From Klebsormidium nitens (lineage: Eukaryota > Plantae > Klebsormidiophyceae): a stretch of DNA of 64,000 bases. Shown piece by piece: positions 5,827 through 62,778 of this stretch (the stretch's first letter is position 1; the number at the start of each line of letters is the position of its first letter). The DNA lies in the NCBI GenBank assembly GCA_000708835.1, contig DF237400.1:11934-75933 (forward strand). The letters run 5' to 3'. The translations under genes were made by a program, and so were the position numbers. Under the pieces are notes generated by a model, which saw only the letters and a program-made list of their open reading frames with translations, was not told where the DNA came from and made no database searches.

Positions 5827-7192
5827 TTAACTAATTTGTTCTAGCCCCTTGACTGCCTGGATAGTTGATGCAAGTTTGTGGACGAGATCAAGAAGCTGCA
5901 ACCAAAGACCAATACGGTGTCAGGACATGAAGCTTGAAGCAGATTTTGACGGCCGTCGTCATGATCAAGTACCACTGATCTATCCCACCACTTGGTTGTA
6001 CGAAGTGAGTGCAGCCCAGTTCTCAAGGTCCAACAAAGAAACAAAACAAACACAAACGTTTCATGCACTGTCAACCAGTTGTTGACTTGACGTGCGACAT
6101 GAGGTGATCGGAACGAAGCGCACTGACCTGAGTAAGCTCTTCTGAGTCTCGACATTCTTGAATGGCCTCCCGGCACTCCTGCAAAGTAGCGTACATTAAG
6201 AACGACAAACCCAATATAGTCCTCTCGCAACAAGTGAAGCAGGACGATTTTACAGGCATGGGACATTTGGATACATCACAAGCAAAACATTCCGTTATCC
6301 CTGCTGACCCACAAATGTGCGCATATGCTTAATGTCTGCAACTCAACCTAAAGAATGAGGAGCCTCAGGAAGTGTGCTGGCTGAAAGGTTTGTTTGTAGT
6401 CTTGGCGCACCTCTACTTTGGTGACCAGGCTTGATTGCAGCGTCCGTGCGGCACTCTGCAGGTTGGTCGCTCCAGCTGCCGCCTGCACAACACAAGTGTA
6501 CTCAGAATTTGCATACTGTGCAAAGCACCACCTCACCATCGCACTTCATTCATATCCGCTCCAGTGAGAGATCAATAACCGGAAAATACTCTACACTTTC
6601 AAGGTCAGGCAACACGGTGTCACGTTGAAGAAGGCCAAAATTTTTAGGCCCTTACATGGTTTGGCAGCTGGGTAGTCAGGGCCGAGTCAGTTGCCTGCCG
6701 CTTCGCCTCGCGCCCCTCCTCCCCCACGTTACCCTCCATTGCGGCCTCTCTCGCCACTTCCGGAGATGTTTTCCGCTTCGGGGTGGCTGCCTGGCCCGCC
6801 CCACCCTCCCTCTCCACACTTGGCCCCGCCGGCTCGGTGGCAGTCTGCTGGCTTTCGTCCACCACGCGCATATCGCACGCCACGCACCACAGCTGGCGCT
6901 GCCTGTCGCGCATGATGGGTGAGTAGCACTGGGGGCAGCTCATGTCGAGCATGGCCCACCCCTGCAGCATCCGCTGACCAATCAGTGCAGACGCACGGTC
7001 CATCTGTGCAGCGCGCTGCCGCCGCTGCTCCTCTGCTGCGAGGTCTTCCTCCATCGGGGCCGCTATCCCATTTGCCACCTGCCCATTTGCCCCCGGCCCA
7101 TCCGCCACCAGTCCGTTTGCCTCCCGCGGGGAATTCAGCTCCAGCCCCCCGAGACCGCCAATGGCGTCTATGCGGTCCTCTAAGCCCGGCAT
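5827..7192 (-). CDS. SSSCA1/ZNRD2-like (Sjogren/scleroderma autoantigen p27) zinc-ribbon protein, 4 exons, about 242 aa
   Basis: Exons 7192-6656, 6482-6411, 6178-6128, 5895-5827, all phase 0. Motif SALIGQRMLQGWAMLDMSCPQCYSPIMRDRQRQLWCVACD matches the Auto_anti-p27 family. Helical C-terminus LQSSLVTKVEECREAIQECRDSEELTQLLDLVHKLASTIQAVK fits the family C-terminal helices. Confidence 0.87.
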
Positions 7193-7724
7193 TCTGCGAG
7201 CCTGCTTGCAATCACAGCTGATAGACAGCCCTGCTTTCCTCGCCCCTCCTCCTCCTGTCTCCCTTCCTCTCTATCCTCCGGAGTGTACTATAATTAACTA
7301 CTAGTCTCAGAGCACTTTTCTTGATCCTGATTCTTGAATGTGCTGCACGTTTCTGGTTGAAGGCACGGTCAGGAAAACCATGGCTGCGCCGAGCCGGTTT
7401 ACTTGCTCGGTGACATCAGACAAAGACACTAAAGGAGACCTCGGAAGGAAATATTGCTCGGCGTTGTGAAGCTGGTGTCATGAAGGCTGCCTTTCGAAGC
7501 GCCGTGGCAAGAAGCGGGCGCTGACTTCAAAGTTCAAACCATTGCAAACCCCGACGGCGACAGGCGAACCATTGAAACAAAGCCTGCACTCTTCTCGTAC
7601 ATACCTAGAGCCTAGAGGCTAGTGCTTGAGACTCTGAAGAAAAGAGGGAGCGTTCAGGGCGCTCAATTGAACCAGGAGGTGCCCGATTACATCTGTTTTT
7701 CAGGAACTCCGAGGCCCTTCCACC
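7193..7724. promoter_or_regulatory. Short divergent (bidirectional) promoter region between the SSSCA1-like gene and PSMA5
   Basis: Only about 530 bp between the opposed ATGs. A pyrimidine-rich acceptor-like TTTTTCAG just before the PSMA5 ATG suggests a 5'UTR intron. Confidence 0.55.
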
Positions 7725-10700
7725 ATGTTTCTCACCAGGTAAGAGGATTTACTGCAATTTAACTGCTGTGCTAGAGCTAACTCGATGCGACAATTCACAA
7801 AGTTGGTCGTTTACTAAACGGCTGTGCTTGGCGCCATGTCTCAGATTAGCATCCGGTATCCAAAGCAATGGAATTGTCTTACCTAAGATGGTTGTTACAA
7901 AATCTGTAGAGGTCGATCACAGGACCTGACCTATCAGCAACCTGTGACCTGACCCTATTGGGCGATTACGAATCATAGAAGCTGGTTCCGAGGGGATCGA
8001 GTTCTGTGAATCGAGCATATTGCGATGAAAACAAATATGTCTGGGCTTCTGTTAGTTGACGCTTGGTGTATGAGCGCTCTCAGACTGCTGCAGAGGCGTA
8101 TGACAATTGGTACTTTCACATAGAGAGGTAATAGAAGGGTCGCAACGCCTCTCATTGAGCATGTTGTGGACCGTGCAGGAGTGAATATGATCGCGGCGTC
8201 AACACCTTCTCTCCGGAAGGGCGGCTCTTTCAAGTGGAGTACGCTATAGAAGCCATCAAAGTAAGTGATGATTCTTGGGGTGATCAATTAAGTAGACTGT
8301 GGTTGCCCTGAATGCGATTGGTGCACTAAGACTATCTTCACCGTCAGCTCACCTTGAATGATCTTGCAGCTCTGCTTCTTTAATCCTCATTCTCGTCTGT
8401 GTGCAGCTGGGGTCCACTGCTGTGGGTGTGGCTACCAAGGAGGGGGTCATTCTGGCGGTGGAGAAGCGCATCACGTCACCCCTGCTGGTAAGTGCAGCCA
8501 ATTGCAGCTTCCCCTAAGAACCAGGCAATTTGTGAGGATGATTACATAGGCGCTCTGCATCAAGGTCTGTTGCTCGGTGCTCAAGGATCAGGCGGTTTCC
8601 ATGCTCATATTACTCTGATTGCGACTTGGGGTTTCTCAGTGACTTGGGGTTTCTCAGTCTCCATATCTATGAATACTGTCAGAGCCTAGTATCATAGTAT
8701 GTAGTGGTTGGTTATCTGCAGGAGCCCCGGAGTATTGAGAAGGTGATGGAGATTGATGAGCACATTGGGTGTGCCATGAGCGGGCTCACTGCTGACGCCA
8801 GGACTCTCATCGACCATGCCAGAGCGGAGACCCAGGTCAGACTTTCTCTCCCGCTCCATAAGCAACTGCAGGATAGGGAAATTGCCCTCATTTGTTGGGA
8901 TTGCCCACTCGCTCAAGGTCGCCACTGAGGTTGCTTCCTTAGAATCTCCTAAGTGCGCTCTTTTGAAAACCTCCAAGGCACTTGAGACTGGTACTGTCCC
9001 CGCCTTGGATAGCATCACATGACAACCCGATCACTTGCGTTTCCACAATATGACGCAGTGGCGTCTTTGCAAATCATCGATCATTGCTTGGCGCAAGTGT
9101 TCATGTCGATACGGGAAACCTGTAAGGCTTTGCGATGTGGTCACCAATGTCAGTGAGCTGTGCTGAAGACTGGTGGCTGTGTTGTGCAGAGCCATCGGTT
9201 CACGTACAACGAGCCCATGACGGTGGAGTCCTGCACGCAGTCCCTCTGTGACCTGGCGCTGCGCTTTGGAGAGGATGGGGAGGACTCCATGGTGAGAGAT
9301 GTGCTGCGATGTTGGTCTGTTTGGTTTTCCGGCTTTGATTGCGAAATGGTTGCCTGCTTGGTAATAGTACACAAGAAAGTTTCTGGAAATGCATTAGGTT
9401 ATCAACGTGTGTCTGGGTTTGAAGCCTCTACAAAGTATGTCATATCCAAAATGTCCGGCAATAGTAAGGCTTCTGAGTCATTGCGAGTCATTGTGTGCTG
9501 GCTAACCATTTAGTGTTCCCCTTTTTGTCCTTCTGCTGACCAGCCTTTCCCCGCTTTACTTTCTCTGTGCAGAGCCGTCCGTTTGGGGTGGCGTTGCTCA
9601 TTGCGGGCTGGGACGAGAGCGGCCCCTGCCTGTAAGCTATGGCCCTGACGTCCTTAGCAGTGTTTCGTGCAGTTGTATGGTCACAGTCTCTGCTTGTAGA
9701 GCTTCACATGGTGCTGGCTTTCTGGCGTTCGTGGATCCACATACATCGTTTGTTTATGAGGCCATTCCTCGGGGGGGTCCACGACACGGCCAGGACCGTG
9801 AAGAGAAGACTTTTGCTTCTGACAGCCGTTTCTAGCTGGAGACCGCGCCGATTCCTGCCTTGAACTGCGCTCCTTCTGCAAAGCGTTGATTTCTCTGGCT
9901 TGCAGATCGTCGTATTTCAAGTGTTTCTTGGAGATTACTTGGGATGGCTTATTGACAAGCGCAGTCATCTTGCTTGCAATCGTGCCCTTGTCTACCAGGC
10001 TGCTCTGACGGTCCGAAGTGACCGAGTAATTCTCTGCTTCAAGCTGGCACTGGTTCTCCTAGTGGCTGTGCGGCCGAGCTGAGCGAGACAAGCTGCCCGT
10101 GCTGTGTGCAGGTACCACACGGACCCATCCGGCACATTTGTCAAGTACGAAGCTAAGGCTATCGGCTCCGGGTCGGAGGGGGCGCAGTCGTCCTTGCAAG
10201 AGCACTATAACAAGGTAACGTCGACCGTTTTCGAAAGGTTGCCTTTCAATCTGCGATTGATTGTTTTTTCCCCTTTACCCTTCGTTTCAAGCGCTCGTTA
10301 ACTTTGGCAAGCGGTTGGTGTCTATCTGGGCACCATTTAAGAGAGGCCGAGTGCACAAGAAGCATAGGGACGAGTTGGCACTGCGAGAAAGCTTTGCTGT
10401 GAAAGTCGATCCAATAAGTGAGTGCCAGCCACATCGAAGCACGACGGCTACCGTCTGTTATGCTGTTAGGGAATGATTCAAGGGCCTGCTAGTGCCCTTC
10501 ACCAGTGACCGCTTGCATTTCCTTCTCTGAGACCTACCTGTATCCTGCTTAGATTTCGGAGAACCAGTAGAGAGCAGCTCAAGCAGCCGGCCTCTTGTGC
10601 CCTGAAACAATTCGCATGTCTTATGGTTGTTGCTTTTCAAGGACACACCGAATGTGCTCTAGCGTTGAACCAGAGATTTTTCTGTGCACAGGACCTGACG

Positions 10701-12861: not shown

Positions 12862-15800
12862 TCAGGCCTGCCTTTCGGAAGGATTCGAAGCCTCGCATGC
12901 TGCCAGGTGCTGTTCAGCGGCCGCCGTGTCTCTTCGCAGGAGCCTCTCGTACTCTCGATGGCTGTGCGGGATCTCAGAGGCATCATCCGTGATCTCGCGG
13001 AAGTCTTTCCACGCCTCCTCCTGCAAGTTCCACAAGGGACGCGTGTCAGAACCGTAGCTTTTATTCAACGCAACAAATTTAGTGTACGGATGGAACGGTT
13101 CGTCGTTTCAATTCGTTGCAGTGCCTTAGCTCTTTCTTTTGTTGTCCGGGTGTGACCGTAGGATTGGGCCTTATCGTGTTCGTACCCCTGAAACGGTTGG
13201 ACCCTTGAGTAGAGACACTGCACTGAGACTGCGACCAGAAGACAAGAATTTGCACAGATTCTTTATAGCGGGTCGACAGCACAATCAGAACGTGCACGTA
13301 TCACTAACTGAACCCTCCCCTTCAGACTTGACCCATTTTGAAAGGGTCGAAGCAGGCGCCGCCTGCACGCGGCAAGCCATAACGGCGACTCTTCCAGTCT
13401 AGCGTGTCCTGGCAAGTCGCTCGAACAAAACCGCTTGCATCTCTTTGTCGACCACAGGCTAGCCCAATGAGTCCACGTCTGACGTCACCCCAGAAGCGAC
13501 AGTCATACAATCTCCTCCAACAAACGCTTCTCTGCTGACTTCCTTTTGCTGCTAAATTGAGCTACTCTTCCGTAAAGGGAGCGCTCACCCAGACTCTGCG
13601 CAGGCTGCGCAATGGCAGCACTTCCATGCGGGCAAGGAGGAGGGCGGCGTGCACGTACGTCCGAAAGAACAACACCTGAGCACGCAGCCACGAGTGACGT
13701 TAGCATGGGCATTTTGGATGCTACGAGTGACGCCAGCTCATCACAAAGGCTGTACGTTGTTTGGGACTGGACCACGACTTGTGGAGAAACGTGCGGAGCA
13801 GTACATTGAAGTGAAGAGCGCGGTGAAGGACGTGCACTTTGTGAGATTCTTCAGAGTTGCGTGCTTCCGTCTTTAGGCAAAGTGTCAGCGAAATCTGGGA
13901 GGCGGAGGTACTCGGGTCTGTTTGGAACCAGTACTTTCAAAAGCAATCCCTCCCCTGATTACCCCGTTCTTGCTTATCCAGGTTAGCTCCGCTTCCATCC
14001 AAGTGTTGCCTGCTTTTCTTTGATTCTGGGGTAATGCTTTAGTGGCTGCTGGAGTGCGGCTGTGCCGGCCTTGCTGACGTGCCTTGAACCTCCCGATGTA
14101 CACCGTATTGCGCTTTAAAGGCACGCGCACCGGTTGCCTTGCTGAAGGACTCCAAGCCACACGTCGTCGCAGCAAAGCTGGACGGATGAGCGGCGTGGCC
14201 GCACCTTGTCTCGTTCCCACCGCTTTTGGCGCTCCTTCAGCGGCAAATCCGCGTAGTTCGAGTACGTATACTCCGATGCCTGCACGCGGTGCAGGAGCAC
14301 GCACACCATCGTGGGGCCGCCGCGCGCGTCACCTGACGCGGCCGCCTCGGCGCTCGCGCGCACCAGGCGCTCGCCCACCGAGAGGTCGCCCTGCAGCAAA
14401 AACGAGTGGTCGAAGGGGTTCGGAAATCACGAAGTGCGGCAACAGCATGGGCCTGGATTGAGCAGCCTGTGAGGCGAATAGATAGATAAAAAACCGCCAG
14501 AAAGTTCATCAAAGACTTGATCAGCGGACAGGCTTTGAAAGACAAGACCTGTTACCTGTCCTACGCTCGAGCGAGGACCTTTTCTTGTGGTTTTCACGCA
14601 CTAGTGAGAAGGACCCGGTGGAAATGGCAACTTTCGAGGGGCTCAGTCGGGGCTGTGTCACCTGTCCGTTGTCGCCGATGAGCAGGAAGCGGTACTCGGG
14701 GTACAGCGCGGCATACTCCAGGAAGCGCTGGTGCTTGAAGTCCGCAACAGGCCCCCAAGCGCGAATCAGCGCCGCGCGATTTCCGCGAGCAGCGATGCCA
14801 CGTGACAGGGCCTGGAACCCGGCGGACAGGGACCTGGGGAACGCGGGAAAGGGGAGGAGTCGGGTTGAAAGAAAACGATGTATCAACGGTTGGTTGGTTC
14901 GAAGATATAGAGCAATCATTGTGGTGAAGATGGATGCATCTGAGATGGGAGCTTTCGTCTGCGAAATTACTTTTGCAGAGTAGAGTCCTTGGGGATGCAG
15001 CAAGTAGACCGCACTGATAATCGAAATTGGACTGTCAGTCATTCAAGAACCTACGCTTGGATTGCTCTGTCAGATCTCCTCTTGTTTCGTCTCGCCAAAT
15101 TGGAAAGAAGCATATCATACTGAGTAATGTGTCTTCACCCGAATCTTTCAGCCCAGCTCATGGGTCGATCGGCCGGCAGAGATGCCCGTGCCCCACGCCT
15201 GCGCCCAAGGTTTATGATGGTTCTGGCCCCGCAGAATCCTCCGGCTGCGCCTACGCGACTTAGGAGCTCCTTTGTACTTCCTTTTTTTTTGTTTACCAAA
15301 GCGTTCTTCCTCAGGGCCAAATCCGTGATCAAAAAAGTTCCCGAGCGCCTTACCCGGGCAGGACGGTGGGCATGACAGCGAAGCGCTTGGTTCGGTACAG
15401 ACCGTGCAGGTACCGGTAGATGGCCGCCTCCACCCAATCGCTGTACGCATGGGGCCGCGCCCACAAAAAGGCCACGCCGGGCAGGCCCGGGGGCGGCTGC
15501 AGCCAGGAATTTGCAACGTTCACCATACGACTGCAGCGCCTGATCGGTCGATTACTATAGCGAAGTCGGATATCCAGAGTGTGCTCTGCCCTTTCATGAT
15601 CGAGCGCTGCGCATCAGCATGAATCAAGCAAGGCGGGGGCGGTGGGAAAAACCGCAGACACGAATCCGCAACTTTGTGTCCACAGACGGATTGTCGAGAA
15701 TTAGAAAAGGCACATTGACGGGCTCAGCTGGCTGGAGATGCCACGTGTCCTCACCTCGTCAGCTAGTGCGGCAGTGCCTCCTTCCGAGCTGCCTGGAACG

Positions 15801-48656: not shown

Positions 48657-51600
48657 ATGGCGCCGAAAAAGCCACCCGCAAATGGCAGCCTCCCTGAGCC
48701 CAATGCTGGTCTGTCAGCCGATCGCGACGATGCTGAGCGCATCCGTCAGGCAGCGGAAGAAGCGCTGTGGGTGGAGAGTGCTGAAGAGTGGTTGGAAGAG
48801 GTCGATGACATGTACTCAATGGAGGATGAGGAGGATGAGGAAGAGGACGAGGATGCGGAGGCTACTGCTTCCACCCAGGATCAGATCACTCAGCAGAATC
48901 GACCTGACACGCATGAAATGAAGTCTCTGAAGCTGGTGGCGGAGCTGGCGGAGGAGGAGCTCAAGGACCCGGAGTCCTTCCCTGTCCTGCACCCCGAATA
49001 TGGGATAGAAGTTCCCCATGAAGGCGGCCTAGAGTGGAAGTGTGTGTACGGTAGAAAAGGAGCCAAGTGAGTGATACAGGAGCCAAATTGTGTAGCGCTT
49101 TTGCCGGTAACTTCTGGGTTCATCACTTGCTCAATTGCTTCAGCACCCTTTCGAACCGCCTGTGATGATTGGTGTTGCTCGTTTGATGAGCATTGCTACG
49201 CAAGCTGATGGTGACAAGAGCAATGTGAGAAGGTGTTTGCAAAAGGTAGTAGTGTAATTCTGGTCCGGTTTGAAGTTGGCGCCAGGTCACGTCGCCCTGC
49301 TGGCTGGATGTTGTATTCGTTGATTTGGAGTCAATTTTGACAAGCTTTTAGGCACAGTTGTCCTGCAATGAATGCAGAACATGCATCAAATTCGTTCATA
49401 TCAGCAGGACTCTACCGCGGCTCGTGCCAGCGGAAGCAACATGGATCGTCAAAAGCAAAGCATTCGTTGCTTTTTCGCAAGGTGGAATAGCCATTACCAG
49501 AGTCGTGGGCCATTGCTGCTGCAGCATCCATAAGCGCCACATTGCACTTGTTGTTGATGCAGGTATGAAGGGACGCTGGATGTATATCGCAGTCAGCAAG
49601 TGTTTGGCATGAACCAGCCGGAGGGTGGCCCCCCGGACAGCGATGCCCCCTTGCGAGTGACCAACAAGAACAGCTCCACCCTGGTATACAACCTGGTGTA
49701 TCGCGAGTACATCATGGGCAGGGGTGTACATCAAGACCTGCTGGGGGACCAGTGAGTCATGCAGCACTTGGGCTCCAACTCCTGCCATGAGCAACTACAG
49801 TTGAAAGCAACCAGTGTTTGTCTGCCGTTTGTCAGCTTCCTGCTTGGGACGAGCGTACCATCATAAGTCAGGAAACCTCCATTTGCAGCGGCGCTGAGGT
49901 CGTCTAGCACAAAGCGCCTGCATTGCAGGGGGAATCCGATTCTAAGCATCATCTCACAGCGTTGCCCTTGACATGACATGGGCAAGTACCAGTTCTTAGA
50001 TTCTGGCCATGTCCCTGTGGCAGGTATGCCGGTGAGTGGTGGGGCGGCCTCCGGCAGGGCCATGGCACTCAGACGTGGATCAATCGGGAGCACATCAAGA
50101 CGGTGGACGATGAAGACATGTACAAGACGGACGTTGATGATCCGTCCACTGTAGACGCTGCAGACAGCCTGGACAAGAGTGACAAGTTTTGGGACAAGAG
50201 GCACCCCTTTTACACCGGCAAGCGCAGGTTTGCCTACCTGCATGACAAAGACGAGGAGCCGGGCTGGATCCGCCCGGAGGATGGGGAGCTGCGCGGCAAG
50301 CACGGCGCCTTCCCTGACATCTACCAGTGGACAACGTGAGCCTGCTGACTGACCGCCAGGGGCATCGCTCTTGCAATGCTGTTTCAACACTTGGCGGAGA
50401 GCAGGCAAATGCCCTGCTTCTGCAAAGCTCCTCTGACATCTCTGATGTGCCTCTGCTGTAGCCTTTGAAGGACACTTGGTAGAGGTTCTGCTTGTCAGCA
50501 AAGGCTACCACCATGTGCTCAGGTCTGCAGCTTGAGTCGCCCATAGTTTTTGCGAAGGCTGCTGGCGTCATTGGCTGTCCCGAAGGCAATCAATTGTCCT
50601 TCGTGTGGTCGTCAGCACGTGTGCTCAGTGCGCGCACCTATTCGCTTCTTCTCAGGGCCGACAATCTGGTGGGGACCTACTCTGGCCAGTGGTATCGGGA
50701 CACACCTGAGGGTTGCGGGGTTATGGTCTGGAGCGATGGAACCTCCCTTGCGGTAAGGCCCCTCTCTGTTGGCCATGTGTGATTGCTGCCATCGAGTAGC
50801 AATGATTGCATAGAGGTCATGCTATTATCCAACCAGTGGCTGGGCCGTTGCTGTGTAAGACACATAGCCGTTTTCCTGCACATCACCATGGTGTCACTGT
50901 GCAGGGAGAGTGGCGCCGGGGAGCTTACATTGGGAATTTCCCGGTGTGCACTTACCAAGAAGCAGATGTGAGTTCTCTGTCTACTCTGCTGTCAATTGCA
51001 TCAATTGGGAAGCCTGCTTGTTGCCCATCTGGAGTTGCTGGCTTGTTTGCAAGGAAGGTTAAAGTCTCGCATAACTGCTCTTTTCTTTCAGGATTGAAGC
51101 CTCAGCTTTTACTAACATTCCAATTGTGTTGCAGTTTCACATGCGCCTTGCCCAGCTCGCTGCTCAGAAAGCGAAAATGTTTCAGTACAAGCCCCAAGAC
51201 AGTAAGGGCCAGCTTTCTTTTCTGTGGTGGATAGCTTCTGTGAGAACCAGTGATTGACGAAGCACTTTAGTTCGCCTATGTAGACCCCAATCTAAGGGAC
51301 CAACTCGCAGATTGATGTCTTCAGTGCCCCTCCTGGCAGTCTTCCTGAAAGAGTGTTGATGTGTGGTTTGTGGGCGATAGCAGGAGGTTTGCGGGGACAA
51401 ATCGAAGTCACTCTTCCTCACGCCTCATCTCCACTGCATTGCTGCAGCTCCAATGCGGATCATGTGTGTTTGACCCGTCTGTTCATTGAGCGCTCTGACA
51501 AGCCTTTCCCCCTCGCTTTTAAGGCTCTGGGCTGCCATACTTGTGGGCATGACTTGTTCAACAGCCCCTGGATTGACCATTGCTGTTGGTGTCTGCAGTG

Positions 51601-54600
51601 ACCGTCGTCCATGAGAAGCCACATCTGTGGCAGCACCCATACTTCTATGACGATGGCGACCAGTGGCGCGCACCAGGGCCCATACACAAGTTCTACGAGG
51701 TAATGCCAGCAAACTAGAAGTTGCCTCACCTTGAAAGGAAGTGGTATCTTTCAAGAATTTGCACCAACTCGCGGCAACTTGTTCTCATAGGCCACTGCAA
51801 TTTACCGGTTAGCAGTTGCATCGGTGAAAACCCACATATATCAAACAGATATGTACTCATGGCTGCTTCTTTCGTGGCAGGTCCCTCCTGAGTACCGCGC
51901 GCGCGTGGAGCGCATGGACGCTGAGCGCGAGGCTTGGCTGGACGGGTGGAAGAACGCGGGGAAGGAGCACCCTGACTGGCACCAGCAGTGGACGGCGATT
52001 GAGGCGGTGGAGCAGCAGCAGCTGGTGCAGGTTAACTTCGGAGAGCCGTCCCCGCTCATGGAGCTCGCAGAGCAGGCCGACAAGACGGACACCGATGACG
52101 TGCACGAGCAGCTCAGGTGAGCAGCAATGATGCGGTCAGGAGCACCGTATGTTTGCATGCGGGACCGGAGCGCAGGGTTGTGTCTTGATATAGTAGGCGT
52201 CAAGCAAACTGCGTGTTATCTTGCAATTGTCGGCCATGCCAGCGTTGCCTTCTTGCTGGTCTCTTTTTGACTGTCTTTCTCTGTCCCTGCAGGCTGTCGG
52301 CTGCCGCCCGTGGCGCCATTATCCCCAGTGTGCGGGAGCTGCGGGAGTTGGCATCCGGCCGCCAGCTGGGGCCTGGGCAGCTGCTGACGCTGCTGGCGCA
52401 GGGCAAGGCCCCGCCGCTGCAGATGGAGGACATTGAGGCGACCGTCCAGTTCGTGGACAAGTATGGGGACGAAGGCCTCATTGGGGTTGATGATCAGGTC
52501 AGAAGCTACTATACCACCTTGACTACAGGTGCCCTTCTGCTAGGTGCATCTTTCCGCAGCTAAAATCTACGAAACAAATTCTGGTGCCCTTGGTGCTTCA
52601 AAGAAACATCTTGACATTCTATCGAAGTTCGAAGTTGGCTTGAGTTGGTGGTTCCTTCCTCCGTTGCCCTCACCTGCCTCTTCATTGCAGATCGAGGACG
52701 GGCGCACACAACCCATGACCGTGGAACGGGCCAGGGAGCTGCTGTTGGAAGCGATCCCAGAAACGCTCCTCCGAGAAAGTGAGTGATTCCCTCCCCTTTT
52801 TGCAATTGGAATTGCTATTCTGAAGCGCTCACATCCCTCTTCCGTAAAAGCTGGCGACCTTCAATCAGGCTCCAAGCAGTCTTTGGCTTCACGTCGTTCA
52901 TGTGAGATGGCGCTTGTGCTGACAACTGCTCCTGATATGCAGGCCGGCAGAGGTTCGAGGCAGGCAAGACCCTGGAGCCCCCTCCAGTGAACCTGCTACG
53001 TTTGGAGACTCAGCCGATGCGCGCCGCTCCGGACAAGGACAGCCCAGAGTACGCACAGAAGGTGAAGGAGCGGGTGCTGCGGCGCGCGGAGGAGGCTCTG
53101 CAGGAGCTGAACGACCAGCTGCAGGCCGCGCTGCGCCTGAAGCGCCTGCCGGGGCTGCCCCTCACGCTGGACGATGCGCAGCGCGACTACCTGCGCAAGG
53201 TCAAGGACGAGTACCAGCTGCGCCTCAACACCATCCGGGAGCGCCGGCTGCGAGCAGTGGCGGTGGAGGAGGTCCCGGCCAACGAGGGCAACATGGGCGG
53301 CCTGGACCTAAGCGACGTGGAGCGCAAGGCCCGCCTGGAGCGCCTGCAGATGGGCCGGGAAAGGGCACTCCTGCCGGGGGAGGAGGAAGTCGTCGGCGGG
53401 GAGGAGCCCAAGGGGTGGCAGGAGAAGGCGGACCGCGCGACGATTCAAACGATGGCGGACAGGGAAGACGAGCCGGAGAGCGCCCTGGTCCTGCGTGGGA
53501 TGCTTCCAGACGAGCTGAGAAGGACGCAGAAGCACGCGCAGCGCTTCTACAATCTGGAGCTGGAGGCCACGGAGAAGCTGCTCGAGTTCAGCCGGCTGCT
53601 CGAGAACTACTCGCGCGTTCCCAACGACGCGCCTCTCGAGAATCCCTCCTCCGCTCGGCCCCCGCTTCTTCCCGCCCACCCTCCTGGCCACATCTCCAAC
53701 CCTCTGCCACCAGTGAACACCCCCGCAGAAGCAGCGGAGGCAGTCATGAGCGCGGCCTCCAAAGCCGGTCATGCGCCCCTCCGCGGGGCCAGCAAGTTCC
53801 TCGGCATCCTGCCGTTCGGTAACTGGTTGCGCCCCGCTTCCTCCCCGACCCCGGTTGAAGCCTATGCTGAATACCTGGAAGAGCTGCCCGTGCGCAGCAA
53901 GCTGGAATGGACGGCGGATGCGGCGCCGCGTGTGGCAGTCGGGCCTGGCGGGGAAGTGATTGAGGCGGAGGGTAACTTGGAGTACCAGGACTCGCTAGAG
54001 CGGCTGCGTGCGGAACGGGCGCAGCTGGCGGAGGACATCCGGCGCGAGCAGGACGAGCTGATGGTGGAAGAGGCGAGCACGTACGTGGCCAATGTGGTGG
54101 ACCTGGCGCGGCGCGAGGCGGCCGAGCTGCAGGCGACGAAGCTGGACAGCCGCTTCTGGGGCGACCAGGCAGAGGAGGACAAGAAGCGCCCCATCCACGA
54201 GTGGGAGCCCAGGCCGATTGGCAAGACGGAGGAGGAGCTGGGTGAGAGCCTCTGCTCAGCCGATGCAGCCTGATGGGTTTGTTGTTTCATATCATGCTCA
54301 CTGCGTTTCCATTACAGAGTTGTGGTGAGAACGTCTCTCAGTCTACATCATCTCCTCTTTGGGAAAATCTGTCCGGTTCTAGCGAGTCCAGTACCCTCTC
54401 CTCGCTTTGTACTCACAGCAACATCCTGCCAGGCGTCTCTTTTGTTGGATGCAAGTTTTTGGGCTGCTCATCCGAGACCCCTTCCTAATCCTCCACCCCC
54501 CTCTTCCCTTTGCAGCTGAGGAGTCCCGCTCCATTCGTGACGAAATCCAGCGCCGGTTGGAGGCGGCACGGAATGCGGAGGAAGATGCCGAGTTTGATGC

Positions 54601-57600
54601 GACATTCACGCACGAGGAGAACCAGGAGCGGCTAGAGCTGCGCGAGGCGCTGGAGCGCAAGAAGGCTGCGCTGGACCCCGAGGCGCGGCTGGACAAGCTG
54701 CTGGCGGAGTCCACGTACAGCCAGCCGGGGGCGCTCGTGGAGCTGGAGCTGGCCATGGAAGAGGCCCACGTGGGACCCGTGCTGCCCGTGCCCGCGGCGC
54801 CGGGCGCCGAAGACTACAGCGAGCGGGTGAAGGAGACGTTCCGCGAGCTGCAGGACGTCGAGCTGGACAGGGCGCGTGACGCTGCGCAGAGAACCAAGGG
54901 ACGGCTCACAGCGGAGGAGGGCGAGGAGGACGACGAAGACGACGAGGCAGCACTGGCGGCGGACGCGCGCGCACAGATCGAAGGCCCGGAGGGGGAGGAA
55001 GATAGTGTGAAGCGGCTGGAGCGGCTGGAGAAGAAGATCATGGACCTCAAGTGGGAGCGCGTTGTGAAGGAGGACAGGGAGGCTAGCAAGGCCTTCCAGC
55101 TGCTCGGAGTGACCTACGGTGAGGGCTACCTTTCTGGCCGGCTTCCTACAGCCGTACGCTTTGCCGGCGCTGGCCCACAAGGTGGCGGCTTAAGAACTGA
55201 TTTTGCTCGCTTGGCTCGTTTCGGCCAACCCAATTGGACGGTGGGTGCCGAAGGCATTGTCGGGTGCTGTCGGCAGCAGCATCGACTCGCGTTTTCAAGT
55301 TTTCTCGGCCTGAAAGCAGTGGTTGTCTCAGGTCCGAAGAGAAGACCCTCTTGATTTGCAGGAAGGACTACTTAGATGGTCAAGCTGCTCCCCACTTCGT
55401 CTGACTGGCCTGGTCCCTAACCCTCCCGTATTGCATGTGCAGAACCGCTGGTGCTGGCCCACAAGCGCCTCATCTCGGGCCTGCGCAACCGTGAGCTGGC
55501 CCTGGACGCACGCCTTGAGGCCGCCCTCGCTGACTTCTTCGCCCAGTGGGAGGAGCAGTACGGCCCGGGCGAGCCCGAGCAGGCGCGCATCTTTGACACG
55601 TGGCTGGCCAAGTGGGTGGCTGCCGAGCAGCGCCTGGACGTGGAGCCCCAAGAGCAGCTGGCAGCACGTGCCCAGCAACCGCAGCCGGTGCGCGTGGACG
55701 AGCTGCTGCTGCAGGACCAGGCGACTCCCCCGGTGCTCAAGGGCTTCCTGGCCAAGCTGGCCGATCTGGAGAAGCAGCGTGACGCCGAGGCTGAGAAAGA
55801 GCAGAAGGCCTGGGAGGGAGGCCGCTTCCTGGCCCTGCCGGCCCCTGGCGAGGCGCCCCCCACGCCGCCGCGGCAGGAGGTGCCTCCGTTGGAGCTGCAC
55901 GACGGGCTGGATGCGGTCGACATTGCACAGAGGCGCGCGCGAGAGCTGCTGGCCGAGCTCCAAATCGAGCGCGTGGAGGCGGAGGTCACCCGCCAACTGC
56001 GGGCCCAAATTGCGGCACCAGATGGCGGCTGGGACCTAAATAAGGCCGCAAAAGCACTGCGCACGCTGGGAAGCGAACGGCGCAGGAAGCGCGCAGAGGA
56101 GTGGGATGCGGCCCTGCGCGACGCATTTGAGAACGGGAACCTGGACAAGTACCCCCTGCTGGTGCACCTCGAGCGTGCTGCGCAGGAGGAGCTGGGCCTG
56201 CAGGGCGAGCTGCCGCGCGGCCACATCCTGTGGGCGCCGCTGCTGCGGCCCCCGGCGCCCTTCCCGGCCGCGGGCCTGGAGGGCAGCCCCACTCTGCCCT
56301 TGCCCTTCCGCATTGGAAAGGAGAACCTGCTGGCGCGCCTGCGCAGCGACCCCGAGTCCCCACTCTACGACGGGTCCGCGCCTACCGACCCCATCTTCCA
56401 GGAAGGAGCTGTGGCATGGGATCTGGCAGCGGATGCGTACAGCGGGGTATATCGTCCGGACTCGATTATTCAGCCAAAGGACAGCAGGGCAGGAAGCGGC
56501 AGCACAGAGTGGGAGGCCGCCGAGCAGAAAGGAGTCAAGTGGTTGAGCGAGCTGCAGACACGCATCCTGGACTCCGAGGCGCCAGGGTGGAGAGAGAAAG
56601 CGGCGCAGGCGGCCCAGATTGCGGCTCCGTTTTCCGCAACCACGGCGGAGGCGGGGCTGGAGGCGCTGGCGGAGCACCCGCTGTTCGACCTTCAGGTGAA
56701 GCCGGCGGACTTCAAGGAGCAGCTCGCCGCCCGCCTGGTGGTGGCCCAGATGACGGGCCGCGTATTCAACATGCTAAACATGGAGCTGGCGCCCGGTACC
56801 GACCAGGCTGAGTACGTGTTCGCCCCCAAGACCCGCGCGCCCGATGGTGACACCGACGCTGGGGAAGATGCGACCATCTGGGACGACCCCGACCAGCCCG
56901 AGTGGACGCCCGAGCTGTCCATTTACGAGCGCAGCGATGCGGTGCGGGGCCTGGTGGCAGGCCAGGTGAAGCAGCTGGCCCGCTCGGTGCCCGCGCCATC
57001 GGAGCTACCCCCCCCGGGGTCGTCAGTTAACTTCGACTCTGCGGTGGAGCAGCGCAAGCAGCAGGTGCTGAAGAACCTGGTCAAGAACCATCACCCGCGC
57101 AGCTACGAAAAGCTGCCCCGACAGCTCAAGGACGCCCCCGAAAGTTGGCTGGTGAGCCTTGGCATCGCAAATAACAGGAAGAAGGCTGCTAACTTGCCGC
57201 ACAGCTGGCAAAAGGTGCTTGGATAGAGTCTGGTCGCGGCTGTGTTGTACCTTACCGCCAGGAGCTTCACTACGATTACTGCTCTGCCTCAACAGCATAC
57301 TTGAAGCACCTTCGCCGGCCCAGGCTTACTTGGGTGCTTTCTCTCTACAGCCTGGCGAGAACGAGTTCACAGCCAACGAGGCGGAGGTAAACCGCTTCAT
57401 TGACAGCGTGCGGGAGCCCAAAGACCTGGAGACGACCATTGCGAGTTTGCGTAAAGTGGTGGCCGCCCAAGACGAGTTCTCCCAAATCGTGAGCGCCACC
57501 GCCCGGAATTGCACGGAGTGCTCTTGATATCCCATGAATAGCTTGTAGTCGGAAGATGCATTGTCTGCTTCCATTGGACTTTTTTGGTCGCTGATACGCA

Positions 57601-60600
57601 TTGTGAGCTCATTCTGGCACAAGATCCTGATTGTGTCGAGCATTGATTCGGTCCGAGGATGTCACTTTGAGACGGATATATCTACTGCTTTCACGTCCTT
57701 GCTCACGTCTGGGCACCAGATAGGAGTGCCCATCGCGCCTCCCTCAAAGTTTCTTCTTGGCATGTAGGTGGAGCGCGGCAACTCCCTGATGACGTCTGCG
57801 GAGCACCAATTTGTGAAGGAGTTCTTGGTGCCCAAGACGGCGGAGCTGCACCGGTTGGAGAACAAGCTGTGGAAGGAGGGCCTGCTGCTGGCGAAGGAGC
57901 AGCCGGAGCTGATGGCGTTCTGGAAGGCGGAGTGGAACGCACGCGAGGCGCTGCAGCGCGGGGTGGCCGCGCTGATGGACCAGCCCGAGGCCAAGCGGAC
58001 GCAGAAGCAGCACGACGAGACGGAGGCCGCGCTGAAGGACTGGTACGGCCGTGCCAACGAGACGCTCGAAGAGGCCGCCGAGAGGAAGGCCGACGACAGA
58101 GCCACTCTAGAAAGTAAGTGGCTCGGCTATGTTGCTGAGGTCTGAAGTGGTTATGAGCTCCAGGTTCGACACGGCACCCTTTGAGAGGCGCAGTTGCCCA
58201 TCAAGAGCGGTTGCCGTATTCTGGCCCTCTGTCGATCATGTCCTTCCATGGAATTCGTTGGATGAGAACCACCTCGAAGTCATCTATCGCCCAAGCGATC
58301 CGCACTAGTCTGTGTCTTTGAACCGCTCAGTTTTGGTGCGTTGTGTGCTGCGCACCAGAGCCGCGTGTGCTTGTGTGCAGGCCGGCTGTCGGCTGATGAG
58401 TTCCTGGCGCCGGAGGTGGATTACAACGGGCGGCCCGTGCTGACGGGTGCGCCGGAGGAGGTGGGGGCCAACCCCGAGGAGGAGTGGGAGCTGGCGTACG
58501 AGGAGATGGAGCAAGACGACGCGAACGCCTCCTTCTACAACAGGCGCGACGAGCTCGACGAAGAGGTCAGCGGCTGCTGACGATGCATACTCAAGTCGCT
58601 TGGTGTAAGCGGAAAGGAGGCTGCCAGTTTCGAAACAGAGGGCCCTGGACCTGAATGAGTGCAGGGAGTCGACTTGACTTTCTAAATTGTTCACGACTTG
58701 GAGGCTACTCGAGGTCGTTACATGCACCGTCCTTGCTTGCCTGAATCTCACATGTGGGATGCATGCGGGGTGCAGTTCTTCGAGGACGGCCTACGCAAGG
58801 CACGCGATGCGATCCGCAAGCTGGGCGGCACTGCGGCTTTCTCCGAGGACCTGGCCAACTTCACGCGCACGCTGTTCAAGGACGACCTGGAGCTCGCCAA
58901 GGAGCTGCTGGGGCCCGAAGACGAGCGCACCGACGGGTGAGCCGCCGGGGCAGCCGCACTCTTCGGGCAGGGAGTGGAACACGCACAGCCAGGACCAGAC
59001 TCTCGTGTCAGCACGTTTTAGAGTGTCTTAGGGCCCAAGCATGTCTTGGCGTGACAAGAACGCTACCATTCGTTTAGGTGGATAGTTCGAGACATCTGCG
59101 TGACTGTTTGCCTCTTCCGCTTGCTCTCCAGGGACGATGACGGCGACGAGGAGTACGAGGAGGTAGAGGTGGAGGTGGAGGTGGACGACGACGAGGAGGA
59201 GGCCTACCCGCAGGAAGAAGGTCAGCCGGGCAGCCAGCCCACCGGCACAGTGCAGGCACACAAGGATGACGATTGCAGCACAGGCTAATGTATGGGAGTG
59301 TTCGTAACTAGTGCTGTACTAGCGCGTGCTTTGAATACCTTCAACCAGTAGCTTTGCTCAGCTCACTCTGCTTTACATTCGGGCAATTCAGCAGTTTCGG
59401 TCAAATGAGCCGCCTTTGTTTGGCGGTCGGCTCAGGTTGGATTTTTGGGCAGCTGGACAGGTTGGACAAAAGGTGCAGGAGCCTTTCCTGCAGAATATGC
59501 GGGCGTAACCTCATGATCATTCTTCGCGCTCGTGCAGGTGACTTTTGGGAGGCCGTCAAAAGGCAGCTGCACGCGACTTCACCAGCAGACCTGGACAAGA
59601 GAGTGGCGGAACAGAGTGAGAACCATGTCGAAGTTGCTGGCGTTCTGGCAATCGGATGCTGACATCACCTGAGAGCAGGATCACATCTACAGTCCTCTCT
59701 ACAGCATGCTTACCATGTGTTTACCAGTCAGCATCTGCCGCCGCCTGCTCGTGCTGTAACCCCTGCTTGACGCTGTTGCTGCAGAGACCCGCGCGTTGAG
59801 CCTCAAGGACGTGTTGCCAGATGCGCTCGAGTCCAAGATCACAGCGCAAGTGGAAGCAGAGCGGCCTGCCTCAAGTAAGTTCGTTGGCGTACCCCGCTGC
59901 TCACAAGTAGCTGATGTCAGGCCAGACTCAATGGTCTGCTGCACGACCCGAGATCCGCCCAAGCCCCCTCTGTTGGTCCGTCCTGGATTAGGACCTTCGC
60001 ATTGAACTGCTTGAGAAAGCTCCGCCCCAGGTGCTGACTTCATCCTGGTGCGCGCTTGGCGTGCAGAGGACAAGGCGGTGCTGTGGAACATGACGGAGGA
60101 CGACGAGACGAAGCTGGACGTGTTTGCAGTGGCCCCCGACGGCAAATTCTCCAAGTTCGACTCGCAGAACCGCGCGTTCCTGCCGTACGCCGACCTGGAC
60201 GCGCTCGTCGTCAACCCCGCAACGGCGAAGCCGCGGCCAGGGTCCCCTGAGGAGGAGGCTGTCCTGGCCGCCGAGCAGGAGGCCAAGAGGGCCGCCGCCG
60301 AGGAGCGCCGCAACCGCGGGCTGGACGACGTCATCCCGGCCGAAAGGGTGAGGGCCCGCAACAGGGCTTCCAGCTTTTGACGTGGCCTTCAAACGAGGTT
60401 CACAAGCCGTGTGCATATGCGCATCGTGTACTTTCCGCTCTGCGCAAGCGGACCTGCAGACGGGCGGGCATGCAAACGGCCTGCCAGACGGCCATTTTGA
60501 TACTCATTTCCTTTGAGTAAAAGTGCAGGACAGCTGCCTGTTGAGACGGTTGATTGGGCTGCCAACTCTTGCTCGATCAGCGTCTTCGAGAGCACTTTAG

Positions 60601-62778
60601 TGCTGGTTCTGACTGCGGGGGTGTGCGCCGCGTGCAGCTGGAGGTGGACCAGTACGGCTACGCGGTGGTCAAGTCGGGCGTGGAGGAGGAGGAGGAAGAC
60701 GAGCGCACGACGGGCCAGGAGTGGCGCCGCCAGCCGTGGTACAGCGACGAGCCCTTCTTCGACTTCCTGGAGATCCCCAAGGCCGCGCCCGAGCTGACGC
60801 TGGACCACGAAAAGGAGTTCCTGCTTCAGGGCGTGTGGGCCGCCGCAGCCAAGACGCCCTGGATTGGCGACGAGGGCGAAATCACCGACCCCGAGACCAA
60901 GAAGGTGAGCGCCACGTGCAGTCGCAACGATACGGGTGTTCCCGGAATTCAATAACAGAGCGTGCCATAGATATAGTTGGGCGCTCACGCAGCCTCAGAC
61001 AGGGGCCAGCTCGACCACCGCTACTGTCATCACACCCTCTGTGACCATCTGCAGAAATGGCGGACAGTTGGGGCCGGGGTTCTACCGTGGAGTCGACTTG
61101 TCCCTGGGTGCTCGGCGGCGACTTTGCCGCATGTCATAGTCCGCCTGCCCTGGTTCTGACTGCGTCGGGCCGCTGCTGGCTGCTGGGTGCTTGCAGGAGC
61201 GGGTGGACGCTGCAGTGGCCGCTGCAAAGGAGGCGGGCGTGCGGCGCAGCCAATGGGCGTCGGCGTCCAACCCGGACGACGCCAAGATCGAGTACATGCT
61301 GGCGGACGACGTGGACGAGGTGGAGCGGGACGTGCTGCAGTGGGTCACTGTCACGGGGGCCGAGGGGAAGCCCTTCCTCATCTCCCGCAACGCCGAGGGC
61401 GCGCTCGTCGCCAAGGGCATGCCCGCCCCCGAAACCGAGGTGAGGCCGCACGCACACACCCCCAGCCCGCAGGAACGGCCGCTGCTGCGGCCTCGTTCCT
61501 GAGTCCTCTTGAGTAGGACATGGCAGAAACGAAGTTATTGACTTGACTCGTTTAGGGTTCCTCAAAATCCTACGTGCCCATTGGCCCTCCTTAGGCCTCC
61601 TTAGGTCTGCGTCGCTTGCCATGGCTCAAAACCCGGTATTTGCTCATCCTTAGGACCTCTAGACGGACTTTTGTCCCAATCAAGCTCTCTTTGGGGAGCT
61701 TTGTTGGGGCAGCCTGTCACACTTTTCGTCCACAATTTCTCGATTGCTTGCGCGCGCAGGAGGAGCGCGAGGAGCGGCTGAAGCGCGAGGCAGCAGATTT
61801 GGTGCGCAAGGCGCAGGACGAGGCCGCCGACGACGAGTGGGCGCGCCTGCTGAAGACGGAGGAGGAGGTGGCCGACGCCGAGTATCCCCCCGACGGCAAC
61901 TTTTGCGAGTCGTCGGTCGGCAACGACGATGACGTGGACCCGGACGCGGAGGTGGAGGTGGAGGACGACGAGGAGGAGGAGGAGGACTTCATCGCGGACG
62001 AGGAGCCCCTCGCCGACGATGACGACGACGACGCGGGCGGCGAGGCCGAGGAGGAGGACGAGCTGGACGCGGAGGACGCAGCGGAGCTGCAGGAGGTCAT
62101 CCGCAAGATCAACGCCGGCGAGTTCGTGCCGCCCCGCATGCCCGACTTCCTGCGCAACCTCCTGCGCAGGAAGCCTGCCAAGCGGCCGCCGCCGCCCACG
62201 CAGGAGCCCGGCCCAGGACCAACTGCGTCGCTCACCCTGGGCGCCCTGCGGGTGCTGCCTAACTACACGGTGAGCAGGCATGCAGCGGCAGCACGGGCTG
62301 CGCCGGGGAAGACCAGCCAAGGCGGCATTGAGTGATCTCATTGATGAAGTGGAAAGCGAAGATAGATCTTCCATTGCCGGAGCGCGGCGAACCAAATTGA
62401 CTTTCCGTCAGAGAGTGCTATATTGATGCAAACAGCTTGCAAGCTTACTGAACCGGCCCATCAAAGCATGACCCGTGCAGGCACTGTCATCGTATCTTGT
62501 CGGAATTTTTGGCAATTTCAAGTCCTGCTTCTGTGGATTTGCACCGTCAAAGGCTTAGCATGATTTATCCCTTGCAGGACGCCGTCCGCTGGGTATCAAA
62601 GATGTCGGCCGAGATGCAACACAGACCGCCTCGCGCTGCCAAGAAACTTCCCAAGCATCCCAAGGGAAGCAAACGGTCGAAAACCGCGTCGAAGGGAAAG
62701 CGTGCATGCCCCGTTGACAGGGGCTGCTTCTCGTTAGCATTGCCACTCGGGAAGTGGACAATCCCGGAAGGAATCTAA
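48657..62778 (+). CDS. TIC100: Very large TIC100 (EMB1211)-like MORN-repeat chloroplast import component, 25 exons, about 2655 aa
   Basis: Exons 48657-49066, 49563-49751, 50024-50335, 50656-50752, 50905-50967, 51135-51201, 51599-51699, 51881-52116, 52293-52497, 52691-52778, 52943-54241, 54516-55118, 55443-57151, 57351-57488, 57768-58113, 58381-58565, 58776-58936, 59132-59220, 59538-59615, 59785-59874, 60067-60347, 60638-60904, 61197-61439, 61760-62269, 62578-62778. All GT-AG and phase-consistent (7968 nt). MORN motifs YAGEWWGGLRQGHG and YSGQWYRDTPEGCGV. LAQLAAQKAKMFQYKP and QHPYFYDDGDQWRAPGPIHKFYEVPPEY..MDAEREAWL match my recollection of Arabidopsis TIC100. The last intron is less certain; read-through would stop at 62335. 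Confidence 0.85.

Follow-up and report, generated by a model that had tools for sequence, protein, structure and literature searches.

One gene for a 2655-residue protein with a TIC100 core and a probable clade-specific addition in Klebsormidium nitens

Is a very long open reading frame in the streptophyte alga Klebsormidium nitens the product of one gene, how much of it is TIC100, and what is the remainder? The question matters because TIC100, an essential scaffold of the disputed 1-MDa TIC complex, is poorly understood, and because the available structures are those of one chlorophyte and of land plants. The DNA analysed (the window) is a stretch of 64,000 nucleotides of contig DF237400.1, and all coordinates given below refer to it and to its forward (+) strand. 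Our answer is that a single nuclear gene, KFL_004510100, probably encodes the TIC100 homologue of K. nitens with an addition of ~2200 residues that is specific to the Klebsormidiophyceae.

Gene model and conservation

The K. nitens gene at 48657–62778 (+) consists of 25 exons and 24 introns, which in the window are 152–496 nt long and all of the GT-AG type. The gene model was obtained by splice-aware dynamic programming and was then refined with two orthologous loci (L001 and L002). When the exons are joined, they form an ORF of 2655 aa, the predicted product of which has a molecular mass of 298.6 kDa and a pI of 4.6 and is about three times as long as the known TIC100s (871 and 955 aa, or about 100 kDa). 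This product, although built independently, is identical at 2655 of 2655 residues with GAQ88683.1 (P0018; UniRef100_A0A1Y1IDL8), the K. nitens "hypothetical protein KFL_004510100", for which there is a single gene call in GenBank (DF237400.1:60590-74711, which is 48657–62778 of the window). Both the in-frame, canonically spliced ORF of 25 exons and the giant size, as claimed in the initial annotation, were thus recovered. The model in GenBank was predicted with Augustus, helped in general by transcript mapping (PMC4052687). KFL_004510100 is not mentioned in any paper of the literature searched. It should be noted that the 2655-aa ORF is obtained with the start of exon 21 at 60067 (acceptor CGTGCAG); a weaker acceptor upstream, at 60031, would yield 2667 aa.

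The same gene is present on two related algal contigs with intact ORFs of 2651 aa (L001) and 2671 aa (L002). The splice positions are equal to those in K. nitens, and any difference in exon length is a multiple of 3. Intron 17 is absent from L001, in which exons 17 and 18 are fused (13359–13584) exactly at the predicted splice. Judged from the sequence, 48657–62778 is therefore one gene, as had been proposed: two relatives keep the whole ORF with matching splice positions. Over aa 445–2420 the Ka/Ks ratio is 0.17 versus L001 (Ks 0.35) and 0.28 versus L002 (Ks 0.73). Such ratios, together with an intact ORF in two relatives, are far beyond chance, and the purifying selection that they indicate suggests that the ~2200 additional residues are functional.

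The TIC100 core

Exon 1 (48657–49066, aa 1–136; 410 nt, also in L001, and 422 nt in L002) contains the start codon and an acidic N-terminal region up to the first MORN-like turn. Its aa 1–124 have a D+E content of 30.6%, similar to that of plant N-termini, and are without significant alignment, the hhalign match starting at aa 125. There follow the first MORN-like segment (YEGT...) in exon 2 (49563–49751, aa 137–199), the MORN repeat YAGEWWGGLRQGHGTQTW with a loop in exon 3 (50024–50335, aa 200–303) and another MORN repeat in exon 4 (50656–50752, aa 304–336; Pfam 312–333), where significant alignment to TIC100 sets in. Exon 5 (50905–50967, aa 337–357), whose donor is conserved in 3 of 3 loci, lies within the beta-jellyroll region; exon 6 (51135–51201, aa 358–379) encodes the AAQKAKMFQYKPQD block, the counterpart of plant AAAKARMFINKPDG; exon 7 (51599–51699, aa 380–413) has the QHPYFY..W.APG..FYE signature; and exon 8 (51881–52116, aa 414–491), which ends in a split codon, holds the final TIC100 homology (to ~aa 458) and is clade-specific thereafter.

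The initial annotation had considered the N-terminal part to be of the TIC100 type, and the profile and sequence searches agree. With aa 1–620 as phmmer query against the PDB, aa 311–458 align with residues 336–486 of Arabidopsis TIC100 (8z9y_D) with E=3e-19, and in a comparison by hhalign of the algal with the plant profile aa 312–444 match angiosperm TIC100 with 98.8% probability (E=1e-16). A second, collinear hhalign match pairs aa 125–214 with plant residues 199–284 (E=0.013). Pfam MORN (PF02493) is found with 31.4 bits (cut-off 22.5) in two stretches, the best being aa 312–333, and MORN proteins of the PDB match aa 188–222 and 311–357. The QHPYFY-x7-APG-x4-FYEV signature at aa 391–414 corresponds to 8z9y_D residues 416–439 (E=4e-5); TIC100 is the only PDB match of this block, and its DNA pattern retrieved 15 metagenome loci, 15 of 15 with the plant TIC100 block. 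By these alignments, TIC100 homology is solid for aa ~125–460, which they identify as the MORN/beta-jellyroll core together with the beginning of the TIC100 middle helical domain.

Intron positions are common to the K. nitens gene and land-plant TIC100 genes. In 15 land-plant TIC100 loci, an intron directly after FYE lies exactly where it does in K. nitens, and exons 4–8 pair one-to-one with angiosperm TIC100 exons: exon 5 has 63 nt as in angiosperms, exons 4 and 7, of 97 and 101 nt, have plant counterparts of 91 and 104 nt, and the 67 nt of exon 6 correspond to a 22-residue plant block.

Arabidopsis TIC100 (AT5G22640, EMB1211 or CUE8; 871 aa; PDB 8z9y chain D) has in common with the algal protein the third MORN repeat, the AAAKA.MF..KP block and QHPYFY..W.APG..FYEV, all within the aa 311–458 alignment. 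The placement of the MORN repeats is similar, at 219–239, 243–257 and 337–352 in Arabidopsis (PMC9338805) and at ~137–150, 200–217 and 309–348 in K. nitens, and both proteins have an N-terminus of acidic composition and a late Asp/Glu tract. However, no significant alignment is found past aa ~460, and ~2200 of the 2655 algal residues are without counterpart. Chlamydomonas Tic100 (Cre06.g300550), a subunit of the solved TOC-TIC supercomplex, is normal-sized (955 aa) and only 16% identical with that from Arabidopsis (PMC7768757 SI). It is composed of an N-terminal helical part, a beta-jellyroll with MORN motif and helical domains on flexible loops (10.1101/2022.11.20.517165). This is the domain order expected for the K. 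nitens core, and Chlamydomonas Tic100 too is soluble, without a membrane segment; in phmmer it gave no match at E<=1 to aa 1–620.

The additional region and the C-terminal end

The region beyond the core begins with exon 9 (52293–52497, aa 492–560), which is clade-specific and highly conserved, and exon 10 (52691–52778, aa 561–589), which is present in the comparison with L001 and L002. Exon 11 (52943–54241, aa 590–1022), with long predicted helices and Pro-rich linkers, is the best-conserved large block (79% identity in L002, Ka/Ks 0.08–0.18), followed by the very acidic exon 12 (54516–55118, aa 1023–1223; D+E 27.9%) and by exon 13, the largest (55443–57151, aa 1224–1793). Five of the shorter exons are of the same length in 3 of 3 loci: exons 14 (57351–57488, aa 1794–1839; 138 nt), 15 (57768–58113, aa 1840–1954; 346 nt), 16 (58381–58565, aa 1955–2016; 185 nt), 19 (59538–59615, aa 2100–2125; 78 nt) and 20 (59785–59874, aa 2126–2155; 90 nt). 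Between them lie exon 17 (58776–58936, aa 2017–2069) and exon 18 (59132–59220, aa 2070–2099), the latter with a short acidic tract. Exon 21 (60067–60347, aa 2156–2249) has 281 nt, as in L001, exon 22 (60638–60904, aa 2250–2338) is a conserved block (83% identity in L002), and exon 23 (61197–61439, aa 2339–2419) evolves near-neutrally (Ka/Ks 0.92–0.98).

An acidic, helical expansion had been proposed. The acidity is evident: aa 445–2420 (E 13.6%, A 13.1%, L 10.9%, R 7.8%) have a net charge of −163 and the whole product one of −229. A Kyte-Doolittle scan found no hydrophobic segment in the product (maximum score 0.88), and a search of it for internal repeats found none. AF2 models predict helices at low confidence, that of exon 11 with 52% helix, including one helix of 69 residues (pLDDT 47.8), and that of exon 13 with 56% helix (pLDDT 41). 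The sequence search with exon 11 gave one match, from the same algal clade, and no detectable relative outside it; that with exon 13 gave two clade members, P0001 and P0002, as its only matches and no PDB relative. Nor was there any likeness of the extra region to a solved structure in the PDB, which is expected to include the Chlamydomonas TOC-TIC subunits. The ~2200 residues thus appear to be a conserved, acidic and mostly helical region known only from a small algal group.

Three alternatives to one giant TIC100 have to be weighed. The model could fuse two adjacent genes, the first (exons 1 to ~8–10) for a TIC100 of normal size and the second for a large, acidic and helical protein of its own; indeed, TIC100 homology is detectable only up to inside exon 8, and ab initio predictors are known to merge close neighbours. 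However, exon 8 ends in its split codon at a conserved donor, introns 8–12 have just 164–324 nt in the window, phases and exon lengths are kept across three species, and a TIC100 stopping at exon 8–10 would have merely 490–590 aa and no C-terminal half at all. Moreover, in each of exons 9–13 the coding sequence 5′ of the first Met is conserved (in exon 9, 38 of 44 residues), so that none of them, exon 9 included, is a start exon. We regard the fusion as highly unlikely. Also very unlikely is that alternative splicing omits the large middle exons, so that the giant form would be a minor isoform beside a main product of canonical size. The number of exons is high and phase-compatible skips are possible (e.g., from the phase-2 end of exon 8 to the phase-2 start of exon 18), but strong purifying selection acts on the middle exons in each of the three species, which means that they are translated. 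Finally, the gene could be a diverged paralogue that is no longer part of the import machinery, with the TIC complex being served by a canonical TIC100 from another locus, as size and novel region differ from every characterised TIC100. Against this speak the land-plant intron pattern and the strongly conserved core: in L002, exons 4–8 are 94–97% identical (exon 4, 97%; exon 8, 94%) with Ka/Ks <=0.06 (exon 8, 0.04–0.06). In addition, a word search with exon 8 (lengths 43–136 aa) gave clade orthologues only and no second type. A paralogue is in our opinion unlikely.

A weightier alternative concerns the C-terminal end. Exon 24 (61760–62269, aa 2420–2589) contains the main Asp/Glu tract (~aa 2482–2540) and the conserved KINAGEFVPPRMPDFLR block and then the motif TASLTLGALRVLPNYT|DAVRWVSKMSAEMQHR, which spans the last intron into exon 25 (62578–62778, aa 2590–2655 plus stop; basic tail; 59% identity in L002, Ka/Ks ~0.2). 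The Asp/Glu tract and the motif across the last intron, like the MORN repeats and the QHPYFY..W.APG..FYEV block, are present in the product as the initial annotation had them. The plant C-terminal motif that it named does exist, as SSLSFASCSLLST|VPSRLQ after the acidic tract and with a phase 0 intron as in the alga; in plants, however, ~130 residues follow, and the likeness of the two post-acidic motifs is suggestive at most. The view that both ends are collinear and only the middle is expanded found no support. There was no TIC100 match at E<=10 for the last 556 aa (aa 2100–2655) and none for exons 24 and 25 alone (exon 25 has no PDB relative either). The post-acidic tails align with E=0.54, a score reached by 46–331 of 500 shuffles, and the plant C-terminal half gave by hhalign against aa 445–2655 a best E of 0.15, for the only candidate there, the non-significant ..FLPY.. 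in exon 21 versus ..FLPLGYDEFF of the plant middle domain. Since collinearity at the C-terminus is not significant, an insert is indistinguishable from a new C-terminal region. All this would fit a protein that has kept only the N-terminal half of TIC100 (acidic N-terminus, MORN/beta-jellyroll and start of the middle domain), and in which an unrelated stretch of 2200 aa, similar to the plant tail in composition only, has taken the place of the canonical helical domains of the middle and C-terminus. We find this quite conceivable but lean against it: three weak features keep the plant order (the ..FLP[LY].. block, the Asp/Glu tract and SL[ST][FL].. with the phase-0 intron), and TIC100 diverges so fast, as the low identity between Arabidopsis and Chlamydomonas illustrates, that a missing signal proves little. 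That the canonical middle and C-terminal helical domains escape sequence searches is a failure of detection and no proof of absence. With no homology found past aa ~460, the Tic56- and Ctap3-binding parts of TIC100 (C-terminal helix) may be missing.

Proposed function and meaning

In the preferred reading, one giant TIC100, the protein would be a soluble intermembrane-space subunit of the Tic20/Tic214/Tic56 chloroplast import complex, and its core would dock on Tic214 as in the Chlamydomonas and Arabidopsis structures, by analogy with TIC100 as an intermembrane-space scaffold intertwined with Tic214 (bioRxiv 10.1101/2022.11.20.517165). The ~2200 residues that follow, Klebsormidiophyceae-specific, non-repetitive and very acidic, would form long helices with Pro-rich linkers, most likely as an extended interaction platform along the intermembrane space, and could present an acidic surface to basic transit peptides. 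Several points count against this explanation: TIC100 homology ends at aa ~460, ~220 kDa of extra protein are hard to place in view of a tower in the intermembrane space of Chlamydomonas that is only 80–90 Å high (10.1101/2022.11.20.517165), and the AF2 models of the extra region have pLDDT values of only 41–48. A TIC-TOC linker, a wider envelope gap, a relation to peptidoglycan or the replacement of other subunits are speculation. A 300-kDa organiser with its core in the TIC complex and its acidic helices extending laterally between the envelope membranes, where they would tether translocons together or to a plastid peptidoglycan layer or, alternatively, fill the roles of Chlamydomonas accessory helical subunits (Ctap3/Ctap5-like), appears improbable.

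Large, lineage-variable, charged and poorly structured additions to translocon subunits have precedents in the acidic (A) domain of Toc159 and the variable helical region of Tic214/Ycf1. These are analogies only, no sequence relationship to the K. nitens addition having been found, and, unlike them, the latter is conserved in its clade and non-repetitive.

A TIC100 homologue about threefold larger would thus be present in an alga that stands close to the base of the land-plant lineage, and its ~2200 extra residues under purifying selection would demonstrate evolutionary plasticity in the intermembrane-space part of the translocon. The gene may be looked upon as a natural experiment that tells indispensable from dispensable parts of TIC100: what is recognisably kept is the MORN/beta-jellyroll core together with the QHPYFY helix, and nothing else. 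A "hypothetical protein" in GenBank thereby gains a name and a testable role.

Gene model and product

The TIC100-like gene lies on the forward strand at window positions 48657-62778, which correspond to positions 60590-74711 of scaffold DF237400.1 (GCA_000708835.1), the window being the final 64,000 nt of this scaffold and consisting of eukaryotic sequence with 50-64% G+C. Its gene model was made independently of the annotation with a dynamic programme that chains open frames via GT-AG introns and scores codon usage, and was then refined by scoring its conservation in a diverged orthologous locus as well. Junctions left ambiguous, those of exons 5, 6, 14-16 and 21, were resolved by base-by-base comparison of three loci, namely the window and the contigs L001 and L002 of two related algae, of which L002 is from the more distant one. 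The resulting model, with 25 exons, 24 GT-AG introns of 152-496 nt and an open reading frame of 2655 aa, reproduces the exon count and the protein length of the initial annotation, and its product is identical in 2655/2655 residues to GAQ88683.1 (UniRef100_A0A1Y1IDL8; "hypothetical protein KFL_004510100"). For exon 21 there are two in-frame acceptors 36 nt apart, at 60031 and 60067; GenBank, L001 and L002 all support 60067, and 60031, which would add 12 residues, is a possible alternative.

The genome of Klebsormidium nitens, a streptophyte alga, came out in 2014 under the name K. flaccidum, with nuclear genes predicted by Augustus following the mapping of assembled transcripts (PMC4052687). 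The model KFL_004510100 has thus been public since the genome release, without a name. Its product has a computed mass of 298.6 kDa, a pI of 4.6 and a net charge of -229, and the hydrophobicity of every segment is too low for a membrane helix.

Head to head with this gene lies a giant VPS13 gene (14000-47800, reverse strand; 4592-aa GenBank product). Since the two 5' ends are just ~860 nt apart, both genes may have a bidirectional promoter region in common. Further away, at 6644-7192 on the reverse strand, is an SSSCA1/autoantigen-p27-like zinc-ribbon gene, the open reading frame of which is 99% identical to K. nitens GAQ88678.1 (KFL_004510050).

The TIC100 core

When exon 7, which carries the QHPYFY block, was compared with the PDB, the sole match was Arabidopsis TIC100 (8z9y_D, 871 aa; residues 416-439, E=4e-5), and with aa 1-620 as query the same chain was found at E=3e-19, aa 311-458 being aligned to residues 336-486. 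PDB searches with exons 3, 8, 13, 24 and 25 singly did not match TIC100, the small exons being too short as queries; with the full N-terminus the homology is clear. MORN repeats score above the Pfam cut-off in the protein, and Pfam searches with ten separate exon pieces gave no useful match. A word search with exon 8, limited to lengths of 43-136 aa, returned a single cluster, which is from this clade.

A metagenome scan with a 33-aa exon-7 alignment yielded 137 pattern matches, none of which was confirmed. With the degenerate DNA pattern QHPYFY-x7-APG-x4-FYE, 15 loci were found, all low in GC and with the plant-type block; these were land-plant TIC100 genes only, with no other alga among them. 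From three of the 15 loci rough angiosperm TIC100 proteins were derived, to which a three-species algal alignment was matched by hhalign over aa 312-444 with 98.8% probability (E=1e-16) and, collinear with this, over aa 125-214 (E=0.013). The gene structures also agree: each of exons 4 to 8 has its own counterpart among the plant TIC100 exons, exon 5 is 63 nt long in alga and plant alike, and the FYE codons are followed by an intron at the same point. The matches to 8z9y_D and by hhalign, the MORN repeats and the common gene structure together show that the N-terminal ~460 residues are a genuine TIC100 core, and the homology which the initial annotation had proposed for this part is thereby upheld.

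One gene with an acidic extra region

The region beyond the core (aa 445-2420) is rich in Glu, Ala, Leu and Arg, with 20.9% D+E versus 12.7% K+R, and self-comparison at E<=1e-3 revealed no internal repeats. It had been described as acidic and helical: acidic it is, and helical is plausible from AlphaFold2 models built from three-sequence alignments, in which exon 11 is 52% helix (pLDDT 47.8) and exon 13 is 56% helix (pLDDT 41.0), confidence values below the level usable for a fold search. The helices, one of them 69 residues long, are separated by Pro-rich coil. No Pfam family or solved structure in the PDB matches any part of the region. An exhaustive HMMER search with an exon-11 profile over 1.84 billion cluster representatives matched a single cluster, a 438-aa ORF fragment from this clade; it should be noted that this search saw representatives only, some of them short fragments, so that a distant full-length relative behind a fragment of another region could escape. 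For example, the 90%-identity cluster that holds the K. nitens protein (P0017/P0018) is represented by an ORF fragment of 449 aa that comes from a different species, the 2655-aa GenBank protein being filed as a member; searches of representatives therefore show the fragment and conceal the full-length protein.

A model of this length could have arisen by the joining of two adjacent genes, and the argument for a single gene is comparative, drawn from the three loci. A word search with exon 13 matched only two ORF fragments, both from this clade (P0001 and P0002), on L001 (Logan SRR23617307) and L002 (JGI metagenome 3300060284), and on both contigs the complete gene is present with its exons in the same order as in the window. 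Exon-by-exon mapping gave intact open reading frames of 2651 aa (L001) and 2671 aa (L002) with GT-AG at all introns. Almost all splice sites are in homologous positions, and exon lengths differ, if at all, by multiples of three: in the window, L001 and L002, respectively, exon 1 has 410, 410 and 422 nt, exon 11 has 1299, 1299 and 1293 nt and exon 13 has 1709, 1709 and 1718 nt, and exons 14, 15, 16, 19 and 20 (138, 346, 185, 78 and 90 nt) are equal in all three. L001 lacks intron 17, its exons 17 and 18 being contiguous in the genome (L001:13359-13584) with the junction exactly as spliced in the model, and this fused exon falls short of the combined length of window exons 17 and 18 by 24 nt (8 codons). 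Exon 8, with which the detectable TIC100 homology ends, terminates mid-codon, and in exons 9-13 the coding sequence before the first Met is conserved (38/44, 6/8, 18/25, 59/80 and 300/436 residues identical to L002), so that none of these exons could start a second gene. Given the split codon, the conserved pre-Met sequence and the splice pattern common to the three loci, a fusion of neighbours in the model is very improbable. The extra region is better conserved than exons 1-3 (exon 11 79% versus 55-68% identity between window and L002). At a Ks of 0.35 (L001) and 0.73 (L002), Ka/Ks amounts to 0.08-0.10 in aa 125-444 and to 0.17-0.28 in aa 445-2420. Exon 23 (61197-61439), with a Ka/Ks of 0.92-0.98, is almost neutral between constrained neighbours and may be a linker for which length alone counts. 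In L002, introns 11 and 12 (6842-7873 and 8486-9377; 1032 and 892 nt) are 3-4 times as long as their window counterparts, and the opposite strand has a predicted ORF of 67 aa at 7689-7892.

The extra region could be an insertion of ~1700-2000 aa into a TIC100 or a new region of 2200 aa replacing the C-terminal half. In the plant loci an Asp/Glu tract is followed by SSLSFASCSLLST and, after a phase-0 intron, VPSRLQ; in the alga such a tract is followed by TASLTLGALRVLPNYT and, after an intron likewise in phase 0, DAVRW. The plant motif that the initial annotation placed after an acidic tract thus exists, phase-0 intron included, but it has no significant match to the algal tail, nor is it the C-terminus of TIC100, since ~130 residues come after it in plants. 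Collinearity of the C-terminal ends, also proposed from the sequence, did not reach significance: phmmer with aa 2100-2655 did not find TIC100 at E<=10, the plant C-terminal half had its best match by hhalign in exon 21 (E=0.15), upstream of the acidic tract as in the plant order, and the post-acidic tails of alga and plant gave E=0.54 by hhalign and Smith-Waterman scores reached by 46-331 of 500 shuffles. Of the two readings, both compatible with these comparisons, we slightly favour an insertion.

Possible function and size

The Tic100 of Chlamydomonas is soluble and shaped like a wreath, with four domains that are only loosely joined, and its C-terminal helix binds Tic56 and Ctap3 (10.1101/2022.11.20.517165). 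From its homology, the core of the Klebsormidium protein most probably has the same function. The ~220 kDa of extra acidic helices would be too big for a tower of the Chlamydomonas type; should the protein belong to the complex, they would therefore extend along the intermembrane space, where they might act as a platform for interactions or present an acidic surface to basic transit peptides. This mechanism is speculative, as are the wider envelope gap and the link with plastid peptidoglycan, which mosses retain, that the initial annotation suggested. That the extra region takes over the role of other subunits finds no sequence support, since neither aa 440-1230 nor aa 1780-2170 matched another TOC-TIC subunit in the PDB.

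The characterised TIC100s have 871 aa in Arabidopsis and, according to PMC7768757, 955 aa in Chlamydomonas, compared with which the Klebsormidium protein, with 2655 aa, is about threefold larger. A literature search with the accessions and with Klebsormidium and Tic100 found no paper that names the protein or treats the size of TIC100 in Klebsormidium. Lineage-specific acidic expansions are not rare. The already public sequence contains a translocon scaffold that has grown threefold in this clade, an expansion that had gone unrecognised.
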